Shown: positions 17,000 to 22,349 of the stretch, piece by piece
Layout of the letters: the number at the start of each line of letters is the position of its first letter
Numbering within the stretch: position 1 is the first letter of the stretch
Sequence record: NC_023610.1
DNA length: 64,000 nt
Reading direction: 5' to 3' (one strand)
Program-made: the position numbers and the translations under genes
The notes under the pieces: generated by a model
Seen by the model: the letters and a program-made list of their open reading frames with translations, nothing else
Told to the model about the DNA's origin: nothing
The model's database searches: none

Positions 17000-17278
17000 T
17001 TAAACGGATAGGAATTGCTTTGAAGAATCGCGCAGGGCCAGAACGTTAAAGTGACCGCTGCTAATTGTGTTAATGATGAAGAACGCATCCTCAGGCTCCT
17101 CTATTATTTTATCGCAGTAACGTCTCGGAGTACGGCGAGTGAATCGTGCTTTCATGGAGCGCGCGCACTTCTTTATTTTCCGAGCATTACCATTATTAAA
17201 ATGATAACAGAGGGTGATGGTTGAGAGGAAATCAATTATCTCTCCCACTTCCTGATAGTCAAAGTTATTCACAGACAT
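17000..17278 (-). CDS. Hypothetical basic protein
   Basis: 92-aa ORF in operon context, locally AT-richer. Confidence 0.55.
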   Translation of the reverse strand: MSVNNFDYQEVGEIIDFLSTITLCYHFNNGNARKIKKCARSMKARFTRRTPRRYCDKIIEEPEDAFFIINTISSGHFNVLALRDSSKQFLSV

Positions 17279-17343: not shown

Positions 17344-17589
17344 TTACCACCGCCGTTTCTTACCCGGAAGATTCCAGCTGGTACCGTTCGAACGGTTAGG
17401 GTTTCCGCGCAGTAGCGCCACCCGTAGATTGAACATGGGGTCCTTTTTAGCCTGTTCCTCCAGTTTTTGCTGGCGCACATAACGCTGCACTAACTGGTTC
17501 GCCACCTGCTTTACCTTGTCGCTCACCGGGTCTGGACCCTTCTCAGTGGTGAGGGTGGTAAGTGGTAAATGCTCTTCTTTATTTTCCAT
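17344..17589 (-). CDS. Small protein with basic C-terminal tag (D)
   Basis: MENKEEH... ending NRSNGTSWNLPGKKRRW; AAGAAGGGG RBS. Confidence 0.6.
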   Translation of the reverse strand: MENKEEHLPLTTLTTEKGPDPVSDKVKQVANQLVQRYVRQQKLEEQAKKDPMFNLRVALLRGNPNRSNGTSWNLPGKKRRW

Positions 17590-17863
17590 GTTTACGGTGC
17601 CCCTTCTTGCGGTCTGGTACCGGGTAGGCGAATGTCCCATCCGGGTTCGTTTGGTAATGACGCCGGGAGTTCTGTGGCATCTTGTCTTTTTTACCTAACC
17701 ATACAAAGCTCATCTTTTCCTCCTTCGATTGCTTTTCTTCAATAGCCGAGATAAGTTCAATAACCTCCGACATCGACATATATTCGATGGCGTCGAGTAT
17801 CAGTTTCTTATCGGCGGCCGAACTTTTGTTTTGCTCGTGGGAAGACCATCGTCCCTTTGGCAT
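17579..17863 (-). CDS. Small protein with ribosomal bL12 (L7/L12) N-terminal-domain-like helix and basic C-terminal tag (C)
   Basis: AAGGAG RBS 10 nt before ATG 17863. DKKLILDAIEYMSMSEVIELISAIEEK aligns without gaps to E. coli bL12 [27 protein letters not shown]. Confidence 0.7.
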   Translation of the reverse strand: MPKGRWSSHEQNKSSAADKKLILDAIEYMSMSEVIELISAIEEKQSKEEKMSFVWLGKKDKMPQNSRRHYQTNPDGTFAYPVPDRKKGHRKHGK

Positions 17864-18683
17864 TGGTAACCAACTCCTTGCGTTGTTTGCCGTTCACCGT
17901 GATGTCACCATTGACCCGTTGACGCGCTGAACCGAAGGTGTTAAGTAGACTACGGCAACCAGGACTGGAACCGAAGGGGTCAGGGATATCCAACGTTACC
18001 GCCTTCACCCCACCGTCAAGTTTATCAAGCGAGCGCTTTAGACGCGCACTTGGTTCGTTGGGTCTAATCTCGTTCAGGTACTGACATTGAACGTCCCGGT
18101 CAATGGGGTCCAGTGGCAAGTCGACGTCACGCAACCAGTTAGGTAAAGAGTCAATCTCAATGTTCAGTGCATCGGGGTGACCCTGACGACTTTTCACAAC
18201 GCCGTACGAGACAACCTGCCCGTCAATCATACGCGGCGAGATACTGATTTCGACGTCGGCTTCTTTACGACCCAAGCCTAACTCGTCAAATTCTTTATTC
18301 CAGTCTGTCGGGGTCGGTGCCCGCATCGTAAGAACCTTGAAGCCCGCCGGTTCATTGGCCATCCGTGCTTTAATGCGGTCAAAGAGTTCCTGACCATGGC
18401 GATGTTTAGCGGAGATGTCAGGGTAGTCTGGCATCCGTTCGGCCATCTCAGCCATCATGCGAATCTTCTCTTCACTAAGATGCGGCGCAATCATTTTCAA
18501 GAATTGGGCGAAGTTAGGAATTTGACCGTTGGGGAACAATGCTGCGTTGGCGGAGACCTTACTGCCATCGAGAGCCCGCTCTAGCGCCGCTTCCATTGCG
18601 TCGGGCGAGTAGCTTACCCCATTGCGATTAGGAACGTTGAGTGAACCAATATTCAACGATACGCCTTTATCTTTCTTTTCCAT
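17808..18683 (-). CDS. Hypothetical protein with basic C-terminal tag (B)
   Basis: 291 aa, TAATG coupling to upstream gene; ends ELVTNAKGTMVFPRAKQKFGRR. Confidence 0.7.
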   Translation of the reverse strand: MEKKDKGVSLNIGSLNVPNRNGVSYSPDAMEAALERALDGSKVSANAALFPNGQIPNFAQFLKMIAPHLSEEKIRMMAEMAERMPDYPDISAKHRHGQELFDRIKARMANEPAGFKVLTMRAPTPTDWNKEFDELGLGRKEADVEISISPRMIDGQVVSYGVVKSRQGHPDALNIEIDSLPNWLRDVDLPLDPIDRDVQCQYLNEIRPNEPSARLKRSLDKLDGGVKAVTLDIPDPFGSSPGCRSLLNTFGSARQRVNGDITVNGKQRKELVTNAKGTMVFPRAKQKFGRR

Positions 18684-19039
18684 TATCTTCTTCCTCTGCG
18701 TTGTTTGGGTGCAGGCCAGGCCATAGTCCCGGCGTTGTTCATCATCAGTTCGCGACGGCCATCACTACGTAAACGCTTACCTTCTACCGGCGAACCTAGT
18801 TCAGCAATACAGTCTAAGTTCTCGACCTTACTGCGTAAACCCCGGGCATATTCCTCAGTATTGGGGAAGAGCCCTTGACTGTGACGCATTTCCCTGAGCA
18901 ACGCCCCACCAATACTCCCCATCCCAGCCCCAAGAACGACCACCTTCCGTTCCTTAGGGTCAATAACGAATGGGCCTTTCTCCCCGTTTTTAATCGCATC
19001 TTTTAACGGGTCGAGCCAATTCTCTTCTTCGTCCATCAT
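18683..19039 (-). CDS. Hypothetical protein with basic C-terminal tag (A)
   Basis: GGAGG RBS; ends ELMMNNAGTMAWPAPKQRRGRR. Confidence 0.7.
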   Translation of the reverse strand: MMDEEENWLDPLKDAIKNGEKGPFVIDPKERKVVVLGAGMGSIGGALLREMRHSQGLFPNTEEYARGLRSKVENLDCIAELGSPVEGKRLRSDGRRELMMNNAGTMAWPAPKQRRGRR

Positions 19040-19824: not shown

Positions 19825-20247
19825 CTACGACAGGGCTATACCGCCAATTGTCACGTCAGTAAACAACTGACGCTTATCGTCCGGGTAGTGTGCCTCCAAG
19901 ACGGGGCCGAGATACCCGAACAGTGCACAAAGGGTCTTTGCGTGGAACGCTATCTGGTAGCGCTCGTGCAGTTTGTAGCCCAGAATGCTACACCCTTCTT
20001 GCAACTTATACTGCCCGCGATAACACTGACACCAGGTTACCGCAGTGGTAATCCAGTTAGTATTATCAATAGACAGAATGGGATTACCGAGGAGCGGTTT
20101 CAAGACTCGCGCGGCAATGACGAGGTCAGGGGAGATAACCCCACCGACCCGTTCAGTAACCAGAGCCAACGGCTCTGGAAGTAATACTGACAACGGCATC
20201 AGGAAGTCGTCAAGTTGGTCATCACTCGACTGAGGTTTAAGAATCAT
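19825..20247 (-). CDS. Hypothetical protein
   Basis: 140 aa; ATGA overlap with upstream small ORF. Confidence 0.6.
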   Translation of the reverse strand: MILKPQSSDDQLDDFLMPLSVLLPEPLALVTERVGGVISPDLVIAARVLKPLLGNPILSIDNTNWITTAVTWCQCYRGQYKLQEGCSILGYKLHERYQIAFHAKTLCALFGYLGPVLEAHYPDDKRQLFTDVTIGGIALS

Positions 20248-20414
20248 GCAGCCCTCGGCTTTTCGTCTGAGAGGGTAATGTGGTACACCGAAGGTTGTTC
20301 GGGTAGTCTAACCATTACCGGCCCCTGGTCGGTCGGGAAACATGCCCAGGGTTTGTTTAAAATCGTCCCCGTCAAGAACGGCTTCTTCAGAAGCTTCGGG
20401 TCTGCGTTACTCAT
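20244..20414 (-). CDS. Small hypothetical protein (56 aa, not in supplied track)
   Basis: GAAGGA RBS, ATG at 20414 (MSNADPKLLKKPF...), TGA overlaps the next ATG; fills the gap exactly. Confidence 0.6.
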   Translation of the reverse strand: MSNADPKLLKKPFLTGTILNKPWACFPTDQGPVMVRLPEQPSVYHITLSDEKPRAA

Positions 20415-21974: not shown

Positions 21975-22349
21975 ATGCCCCAGTACTCATTACCAAATCC
22001 ATCTATCACCTTCCTTTACGATAAGGAAATGGTGCGCCTCAACGACACCTACGCCACACCGGAAATGATTGTACCAGCCGACTTCGAGTCAGATGGTAAC
22101 AGCGCTCCTTGGTTTGCACGGGTCGTCTTCCCACGCTTTGGCCGTGACCTGCCTGCGTGTATTGTGCATGACTATTGCTACGGTGGCGCAATGCCGCGCA
22201 AGCAAGCGGACAAACTGCTCAAAAAGAACATGAAGCGCTTAGGCTTCAAATGGTGGAAGTACCAGGTGATGTACTGGTCGGTTCGCATCGGCGGCCACTC
22301 CCACTATCAGCGTCGCCAAGTCGAGACCGGAAGAATGGCGGCCGTTTGA
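21975..22349 (+). CDS. DUF1353-like protein
   Basis: F.SDG.S.PWF, IVHDYCY, R..AD..L...M...G, MY..VRIGG motifs. Confidence 0.75.
   Translation: MPQYSLPNPSITFLYDKEMVRLNDTYATPEMIVPADFESDGNSAPWFARVVFPRFGRDLPACIVHDYCYGGAMPRKQADKLLKKNMKRLGFKWWKYQVMYWSVRIGGHSHYQRRQVETGRMAAV

Follow-up and report, generated by a model that had tools for sequence, protein, structure and literature searches.

The locus considered here raises the question of whether a phage can carry, as a small protein of its own, only that half of ribosomal protein bL12 which anchors it on the ribosome, and if so, what such a protein might do in the infected cell. In bacteria bL12 forms dimers through its two-helix hairpin, which also attaches it to the C-terminal helix of uL10. 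The N-terminal domain (NTD) of bL12 comprises the dimer interface and the uL10-binding region, and the C-terminal domain (CTD) binds IF2, EF-Tu, EF-G and RF3 (PMC12548414; PMC10931766). A sequence-only reading of the DNA had proposed that a short phage protein carries the first of these domains and lacks the second.

The window, i.e. the whole stretch of 64,000 nucleotides that was analysed, is DNA of Erwinia phage PhiEaH1 (NC_023610, genus Iapetusvirus, 218 kb; 100% identity), and a window coordinate equals the NC_023610 coordinate minus 62,000. Phage vB_Ea277G is 99.3% identical to the window. The annotation of PhiEaH1 includes a nuclear shell protein, the tubulin PhuZ and split multisubunit RNA polymerase genes, and the phage has been named among the closest relatives of the nucleus-forming Serratia phage PCH45 (10.1101/782524). 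Because of this annotation and this kinship we conclude that PhiEaH1 is a chimallivirus, that is, a nucleus-forming jumbo phage.

The gene in question, gp091, belongs to a long run of leftward genes, which are small and hypothetical or serve nucleotide metabolism (thyA, dut, phoH and a DHH phosphoesterase), and tail genes on the opposite strand adjoin this run. Its long frame (17579..17863, minus strand) encodes 94 aa followed by a stop. In RefSeq gp091 starts only at 17779 and has 66 aa, the vB_Ea277G record has the full 94 aa, and the orthologues P0001, P0003 and P0004 are called at 93-94 aa. Upstream of gp091 on the same strand lie gp093 (18683..19039, 118 aa) and gp092 (17808..18683, 291 aa), and the next gene of the operon is gp090 (17344..17589, minus strand, 81 aa), which shares its first 11 nt, from the ATG on, with the end of gp091. 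A scan for promoters and terminators gave nothing above the shuffled expectation; nucleus-forming phages of the PhiEaH1 type use their own RNA polymerases.

Some other reading frames of the window should be mentioned in passing. The 92-aa ORF at 17000-17278 (minus strand) matches DUF7740 (Pfam E=1.6e-9); it is absent from the PhiEaH1 RefSeq annotation, annotated in vB_Ea277G and called in metagenomic relatives. Similarly, the 56-aa ORF at 20244-20414 (minus strand) is unannotated in PhiEaH1 and annotated in vB_Ea277G, genes of 53-56 aa are called at the equivalent position in the related contigs L004, L006 and L094, and this ORF is probably a real small gene. The gene gp100 (21975-22349, plus strand) is annotated as a tail assembly chaperone; its orthologues in related contigs carry Pfam DUF1353 (PF07087), and the annotation may be unfounded.

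Relationship of the gp091 hairpin to bL12

The bL12-like part of gp091, as delimited by the profile matches and the AF2 model, is a helical hairpin of residues 17-45 (17729..17815, minus strand). It contains the stretch from 17812 to 17732, or residues 18-44, which the sequence-only reading had picked out on account of 14 identities to E. coli bL12 over 27 positions. This figure was confirmed with a comparator derived from the PDB, where phmmer against the PDB sequences aligned gp091 residues 19-45 with E. coli bL12 residues 4-30 and gave 14 of 27 identical. A single BLASTP comparison with Salmonella bL12 gave 13/23 identities and 20/23 positives (E=7e-7). The Salmonella comparator was taken from a contig in the phage collection found by tblastn, and the tblastn E-value of that bL12 match was about 9 in the search of 50,697 phage records.

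The Pfam profile Ribosomal_L12_N (PF16320), a search for which had been suggested as a check by the same reading, was found in gp091 (E=0.0054), but at 16.8 bits, under the curated gathering score of 25 bits. As about 1,400 ORFs per window have to be corrected for, this single-sequence match is insufficient alone. The gp091 family consists of two isolates (PhiEaH1 and vB_Ea277G), one IMG/VR contig and a handful of metagenomic contigs. Conservation in related phages, which had been left to be checked, was found in the form of orthologues in three diverged lineages with 89, 69 and 59% identity, and Ribosomal_L12_N matches three of the four family members with a best E of 2.8e-4.

Further, 80 bL12 loci were gathered from bacterial genomes and 32 of these were aligned, and an HMM of the bL12 NTD was built from the first 36 residues of the 32 proteins, which are mainly gammaproteobacterial. 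Among the 1447 six-frame ORFs of the window this model matched the gp091 ORF only (E=1.3e-8, 31 bits; next best 1.9), and no other match was found in the rest of the genome. The orthologues in the three diverged relatives were also matched, at 3.3e-8, 1.6e-6 and 0.013. When a profile of the four-member family was run against 177,635 PDB sequences, the best eight matches were all bL12 (top E=3.1e-5), and residues 17-45 were aligned onto bL12 residues 2-30. Alignment of the family against the bL12 alignment by hhalign gave 95.9% probability and E=5.6e-9, with columns 17-45 placed onto 3-31 only. Nine positions are hydrophobic without exception in the 32 bL12s, and all four phage lineages have a hydrophobic residue at each of them; the most diverged member of the family has 8-10 of 29 positions in common with bL12s. 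One position at the end of helix 2, which is aromatic in 97% of bL12s, is unconserved in the phage proteins.

From the four-sequence alignment AF2 predicts helices at residues 19-27 and 31-57 of gp091, with pLDDT about 90 for residues 21-40 and below 50 for residues 1-12, and leaves the tail disordered. The predicted helix-loop-helix is the topology expected of a bL12 NTD. Foldseek, run with this model against the PDB, returned nothing at E<=10, for which the small size of the query is the probable reason; the confident part is only the hairpin of about 30 residues.

It could be objected that an amphipathic helical segment may resemble bL12 by chance. The match is indeed short (27-29 residues), the Pfam score of the single sequence is below threshold and the tblastn E-value is poor, yet the segment is the only one among the six-frame ORFs to reach its score, the diverged orthologues match independently, and both the hhalign probability and the eight top PDB matches point the same way. 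Chance resemblance is hardly credible after this, and we regard it as effectively refuted. Judged by these profile comparisons, residues 17-45 or thereabouts are a genuine, diverged homologue of the bL12 NTD, as the sequence-only reading had it.

That reading had also claimed that the factor-recruiting CTD is missing, and here too the searches agree. No match to Ribosomal_L12 (PF00542) was found at E<=10 in gp091 or its family, and the hhalign alignment is confined to the hairpin. The NCBIfam model of the full-length bL12 equivalog, TIGR00855, gave a best E of 0.036 and matched two of the four family members. The linker that follows the hairpin is charged and rich in Lys and Glu, not an Ala/Gly/Pro-rich hinge, and is predicted to extend helix 2 as far as residue 57. 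As the curated thresholds are failed and both hinge and CTD are absent, gp091 is a protein containing a bL12-NTD-derived domain and not a bL12. Compared to bacterial bL12 (PF16320; PDB 1rqt, 1rqu and 1zav), it has the two-helix hairpin with the nine core hydrophobic positions, but it lacks the Ala/Gly-rich hinge, the CTD and the helix 2 aromatic, carries an N-terminal extension of 16 residues, is encoded outside an rplJL operon and scores below the thresholds of both Pfam and NCBIfam.

The hairpin probably derives from a gammaproteobacterial rplL through an old capture. It scores 31 bits with the mainly gammaproteobacterial model versus 16.8 with the general model of Pfam, and 9-14 of its 29 third codon positions are identical to those of enterobacterial rplL, which is near random. 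A recent capture from the host was rejected on account of these near-random third positions, along with the fact that no gammaproteobacterial lineage is clearly closest.

Reading frame, start sites and an allele without the hairpin

The stop codon of gp092 is at 17810-17808, and the bL12-like segment therefore lies outside other genes except for its first codon or two, in agreement with the earlier description of it as almost wholly intergenic. The other two frames of the segment hold stops. The long frame of gp091 is open in four lineages, and the sole indel is one of 3 nt, in frame. For codons 19-50 we found omega values of 0.30-0.58 in the gp091 frame only, with about 12/7/19 differences at the three codon positions. 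Of the nine core positions eight have changed, always to a hydrophobic residue (joint P ~0.009 under unconstrained change), and outside the core the hairpin has 24 changes over 20 positions. On this evidence of frame-specific omega and of core changes restricted to hydrophobic residues, the bL12-like segment is part of a translated frame, and the claim made earlier to that effect appears sound.

Selection differs along the protein. The hairpin evolves much faster than the tail, with omega 0.3-0.6 versus 0.03-0.11. Codons 1-18 (17811..17863, minus strand), the N-terminal extension that overlaps the C-terminus of gp092, show no detectable constraint of their own; omega is above 1 in the gp091 frame versus 0.00-0.08 in the gp092 frame. 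The hairpin is preceded by 16 unconstrained residues.

Two possible start sites are seen. The ATG of the long frame (17863-17861, M1) is preceded at 10 nt by the Shine-Dalgarno (SD) sequence AAGGAG (17874..17879, minus strand), located inside the gp092 coding sequence, and both this SD and the M1 ATG, which fall on synonymous sites of gp092, have been retained by all four lineages that bear the NTD. A second SD, AAGGAGG (17719..17725, minus strand), lies 5 nt upstream of an internal ATG (17713-17711, M51). Across the lineages the M51 start codon is ATG, ATG, ATG and GTG, and it is the sole start in a lineage without the NTD. Since the start at 17863 is inside a translated gene and has a long spacer of 10 nt, while the internal SD is of textbook type, the long isoform may be the minor product. 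Programmed frameshifting from gp092 into gp091 was considered; no slippery heptamer was seen by informal inspection.

The lineage without the NTD (L094, 13 contigs) was reached through a search with the tail of gp093. Its gene after gp092 is a 44-aa ORF consisting of the tail only, and the SD of this ORF directly follows the gp092 stop. In the DNA alignment a segment of exactly 84 nt (28 codons; 17722..17805, minus strand) is absent from L094, and an AAGGA microhomology on its flanks leaves the bounds ambiguous by about 5 nt. The upstream ATG (T) and the upstream SD (G) have both been changed in L094, at synonymous sites. In seven flanking genes L094 groups with PhiEaH1 and L006, and as the segment is found in L005 and L004, which are more distant, the most parsimonious explanation is that the NTD was lost from L094 by deletion. 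The hairpin is dispensable in this lineage, and the existence of a tail-only allele implies that the tail is an autonomous conserved unit to which the hairpin is an accessory module. It also implies that the internal start at 17713 is probably used, hence PhiEaH1 may make both the 94-aa and the 44-aa product. The sequence-only reading had counted a 44-aa product from 17713, if it were the only one, against its proposal; such a product now seems probable, but with a tail-only lineage at hand the two isoforms are plausible side by side.

An explanation which has to be weighed at this point is that the 44-aa tail peptide is the only product, and that the bL12-like frame is what remains of an old capture, untranslated or without function. 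It would fit with the AAGGAGG that precedes the ATG at 17713 by 5 nt, with the start codon found at this site in every lineage (three ATG and one GTG), with the tail-only gene of L094, with codons 1-18 being free of constraint in the gp091 frame and with the RefSeq record, in which the long form is not annotated. Such a remnant would nevertheless not be expected to show omega of 0.30-0.58 in one frame only with an excess of third-position changes, nor a frame kept open in four lineages where the other frames have stops and the only indel is in frame, nor core changes that stay hydrophobic. Also the M1 ATG and its SD co-vary with the presence of the segment. We therefore find a mere remnant quite improbable.

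The conserved basic tail

The basic tail unit of 44 aa (residues 51-94; 17582..17713, minus strand) is the most conserved part of the protein. Pairs of lineages differ at 10-20 third positions over its codons 51-94, which have the low omega given above, and across the family residues 55-94 hardly vary. The sequence-only reading had taken the tail for an unrelated replacement of the CTD. This part of the proposal has to be revised, as the C-terminal 38 or so residues of gp093, gp092 and gp091 have in common a basic module of about 30-38 residues at the extreme C-terminus, encoded in adjacent genes. The paralogous copies of the gp091 tail are the last 38 residues of gp092 (17811-17924) and the last 38 residues of gp093 (18686-18799). 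It is made up of a predicted beta-turn Asn-x-x-Gly-Thr, an aromatic-Pro and a basic end, with GTMAWP, GTMVFP and GTFAYP as the versions found in the window, and seven columns are invariant in 12 aligned tails. A leave-one-out HMM made from the tails of gp092 and gp093 had the gp091 tail as its best other match among the 1447 ORFs (E=0.0014), and the gp092 and gp093 tails match each other at about 1e-5.

No further copy of the tail was detected in the whole 218-kb genome. The tail profile gave nothing significant against the PDB and Pfam (best E about 0.5, beta-hairpins of copper nitrite reductase), the gp092 profile gave nothing against the PDB, and PHROGs gave no informative family. A HMMER profile search of 1.84 billion representative proteins returned the family only and no other tail-bearing families; it should be noted that bL12 is absent from this result because bL12s cannot reach significance at that database size. 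Searching 5.8 billion proteins with the gp093 tail returned gp093 orthologues only, and tblastn of gp091, gp092 and gp093 against the 50,697 phage records found PhiEaH1 and vB_Ea277G only. A degenerate DNA pattern for the tail was found in one IMG/VR contig that was already known and in none of the metagenome contigs, but this type of search is insensitive and missed a known relative.

The presence of a common tail on neighbouring proteins points to a shared partner. Reading the three tails as RiPP-like precursors was rejected, since the lengths of their N-terminal parts differ widely and genes for modifying enzymes do not adjoin them.

Two of the neighbours have features of their own. The N-terminal part of gp093 (18686-19039) contains a Gly-rich motif of the type Val-Val-Leu-Gly-Ala-Gly, for which the PDB gives weak, non-significant similarity (E>=0.16) to Rossmann-type GxGxxG sequences, namely the dinucleotide-binding beta-alpha-beta of thioredoxin reductases and related enzymes. 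This part of gp093 might be another fragment-like module fused to the tail; AF2 of gp093 from a five-sequence alignment gave an unusable model with a mean pLDDT of 47. The protein gp090 (17344-17589) has a conserved basic C-terminus that contains Trp; 24 columns of gp090 are invariant in five lineages, and most of these belong to its C-terminal half. On visual inspection this C-terminus has a loose similarity to the tail module, but the tail HMM does not pick it up.

Possible roles at the ribosomal stalk

From the above, gp091 is a real and conserved two-module protein of a small group of PhiEaH1-like phages. What follows on binding to the ribosome or uL10, on the two isoforms and on any consequence for translation is what we infer from it. 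The reading we put forward, with slightly less than even confidence, is that the hairpin targets the stalk, where it co-assembles with host bL12 or takes bL12 sites on uL10 and displays the tail. The long isoform would start at 17863, and its hairpin would join host bL12 or occupy the uL10 sites of bL12. The tail would thereby be placed at the stalk, in the position where the GTPase-recruiting CTD normally sits, and the 44-aa isoform from 17713 would probably supply the tail alone. The tail would then be the core functional unit, and the bL12 hairpin an accessory module for targeting or dimerising. What speaks mainly against stalk targeting is that the hairpin is under relaxed constraint and has been lost in L094, that the extension in front of it is unconstrained and that the long isoform has the weaker start context.

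As an alternative, the hairpin derived from bL12 may serve only as a compact homodimeriser that makes the tail bivalent, without contact to uL10 or bL12 and without any role on the ribosome. In isolation the NTD of bL12 forms a stable dimer (PDB 1rqt, two chains of a 37-residue NTD fragment), the hydrophobic core pattern is the only feature of the hairpin that is strictly kept while the surface drifts, the L094 lineage manages without the hairpin, and in gp092 and gp093 the tail is carried by unrelated N-terminal domains. However, despite third positions that have been randomised, the hairpin still scores best against gammaproteobacterial bL12s, which exceeds what a generic dimeriser would need. 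Moreover, the dimer interface and the uL10 interface of bL12 are established to use the same hydrophobic faces (PMC12548414), so that keeping one tends to keep the other. On balance we consider dimerisation alone rather unlikely.

The homology that suggests stalk targeting would equally suit a hairpin that acts off the ribosome by binding free bL12 or uL10, and so disturbs stalk assembly or the autoregulation of rplJL by L10(L12)4. This complex does exist off the ribosome, where it regulates the rplJ-rplL mRNA (PMC10931766), and the present data do not separate sequestration from docking on the stalk. But bL12 is present at about 20-40 uM in growing E. coli (PMC12548414), and since it is this abundant, titration would need high expression, to which the weaker start context of the long isoform is ill suited. 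We take such sequestration to be distinctly unlikely.

A more elaborate version of stalk targeting can also be imagined, in which long gp091 replaces or pairs with bL12 on uL10, the tail couples the ribosomes to a phage partner and the short isoform tunes this coupling. The surface of the phage nucleus or its sites of mRNA export would be candidate partners of the tail, and phage messages would then be translated locally. We offer this as speculation with a slim chance of being right; if it were true, gp091 would be the first viral factor to hijack the ribosomal stalk via the anchoring half of bL12.

Ribosomal proteins encoded by viruses tend to be those that exchange easily on ribosomes (PMC6375957). 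By the standard of homology and purifying selection in a bona fide phage genome, gp091 counts as a viral homologue of a ribosomal protein. The partial captures of bL12 described for phages carry the Ribosomal_L12 domain (CTD) only, often within large rIIB-like proteins, and conserve the residues that contact uL11, EF-G and EF-Tu (PMC6375957). In our tblastn searches the phage proteins with a bL12 domain likewise aligned with bL12 residues 54-120 only, so the statement in the sequence-only reading that known phage homologues are CTD-based is borne out. The bL12-domain proteins of N4-like and other podophages (Mizuno et al. 2019, PMC6375957) resemble gp091 in being parts of rplL under purifying selection, and their host range overlaps, the examples including rIIB-like proteins of Erwinia, Pectobacterium and Salmonella phages; they carry the C-terminal, factor-binding domain, whereas gp091 carries the opposite half. 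With an NTD-only query against the 50,697 phage records, matches without a CTD were confined to PhiEaH1 and vB_Ea277G, and we found no mention of an NTD-only viral bL12 in the literature searched. The earlier suggestion that such a version may be new is in line with both results.

Full-length bL12s of huge phages (the 735-kb LR756501 and a 467-kb IMG/VR UViG, L093) share with gp091 the bL12 NTD, the viral genome and the absence of a ribosomal operon. They possess NTD, hinge and CTD and could in principle replace host bL12, whereas gp091 cannot recruit GTPases in this manner. In L093 the full-length bL12 (1414-1872) is found among hypothetical phage-like genes and does not adjoin rplJ or rpoB. 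Matches to full-length bL12 in the phage collection are mostly non-viral; the collection includes bacterial contigs and short 'phage' records of host DNA with rplL (e.g. AFYI01000006.1 and OR851263.1).

Chimalliviruses also offer precedents in the form of ribosome-binding proteins, namely PhiKZ gp014 on the 50S subunit (PMC10914614) and Churi gp335, found at the phage nucleus as well (PMC11849849). Like gp091 they belong to nucleus-forming jumbo phages, and they are early proteins for which an action on the host 50S has been proposed or shown; the clustering of Churi gp335 at the phage nucleus suggests localised translation. In contrast, they have no sequence relationship to gp091 and clamp the 5S rRNA at the central protuberance with no mimicry of the stalk, and their binding has been shown by experiment, whereas gp091 is known from sequence and prediction.

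The difference between gp091 and the known partial captures of bL12 lies in the half that was taken, the factor-binding C-terminal half in those cases and the anchoring half in gp091. A protein with the anchoring half only cannot recruit the translational GTPases. Should it occupy the stalk, host ribosomes would either lose GTPase-recruiting arms or gain a new peptide at the GTPase-associated centre, and this would be a mode of translational takeover so far undescribed. The setting is one in which the question matters, as chimalliviruses separate transcription and translation spatially and their ribosome-binding factors are just being discovered. The allele with hairpin and tail, the allele with the tail only and the likely internal start provide ready natural material for comparison. 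As a candidate for a phage factor that inserts into the ribosomal stalk, gp091 is open to testing.
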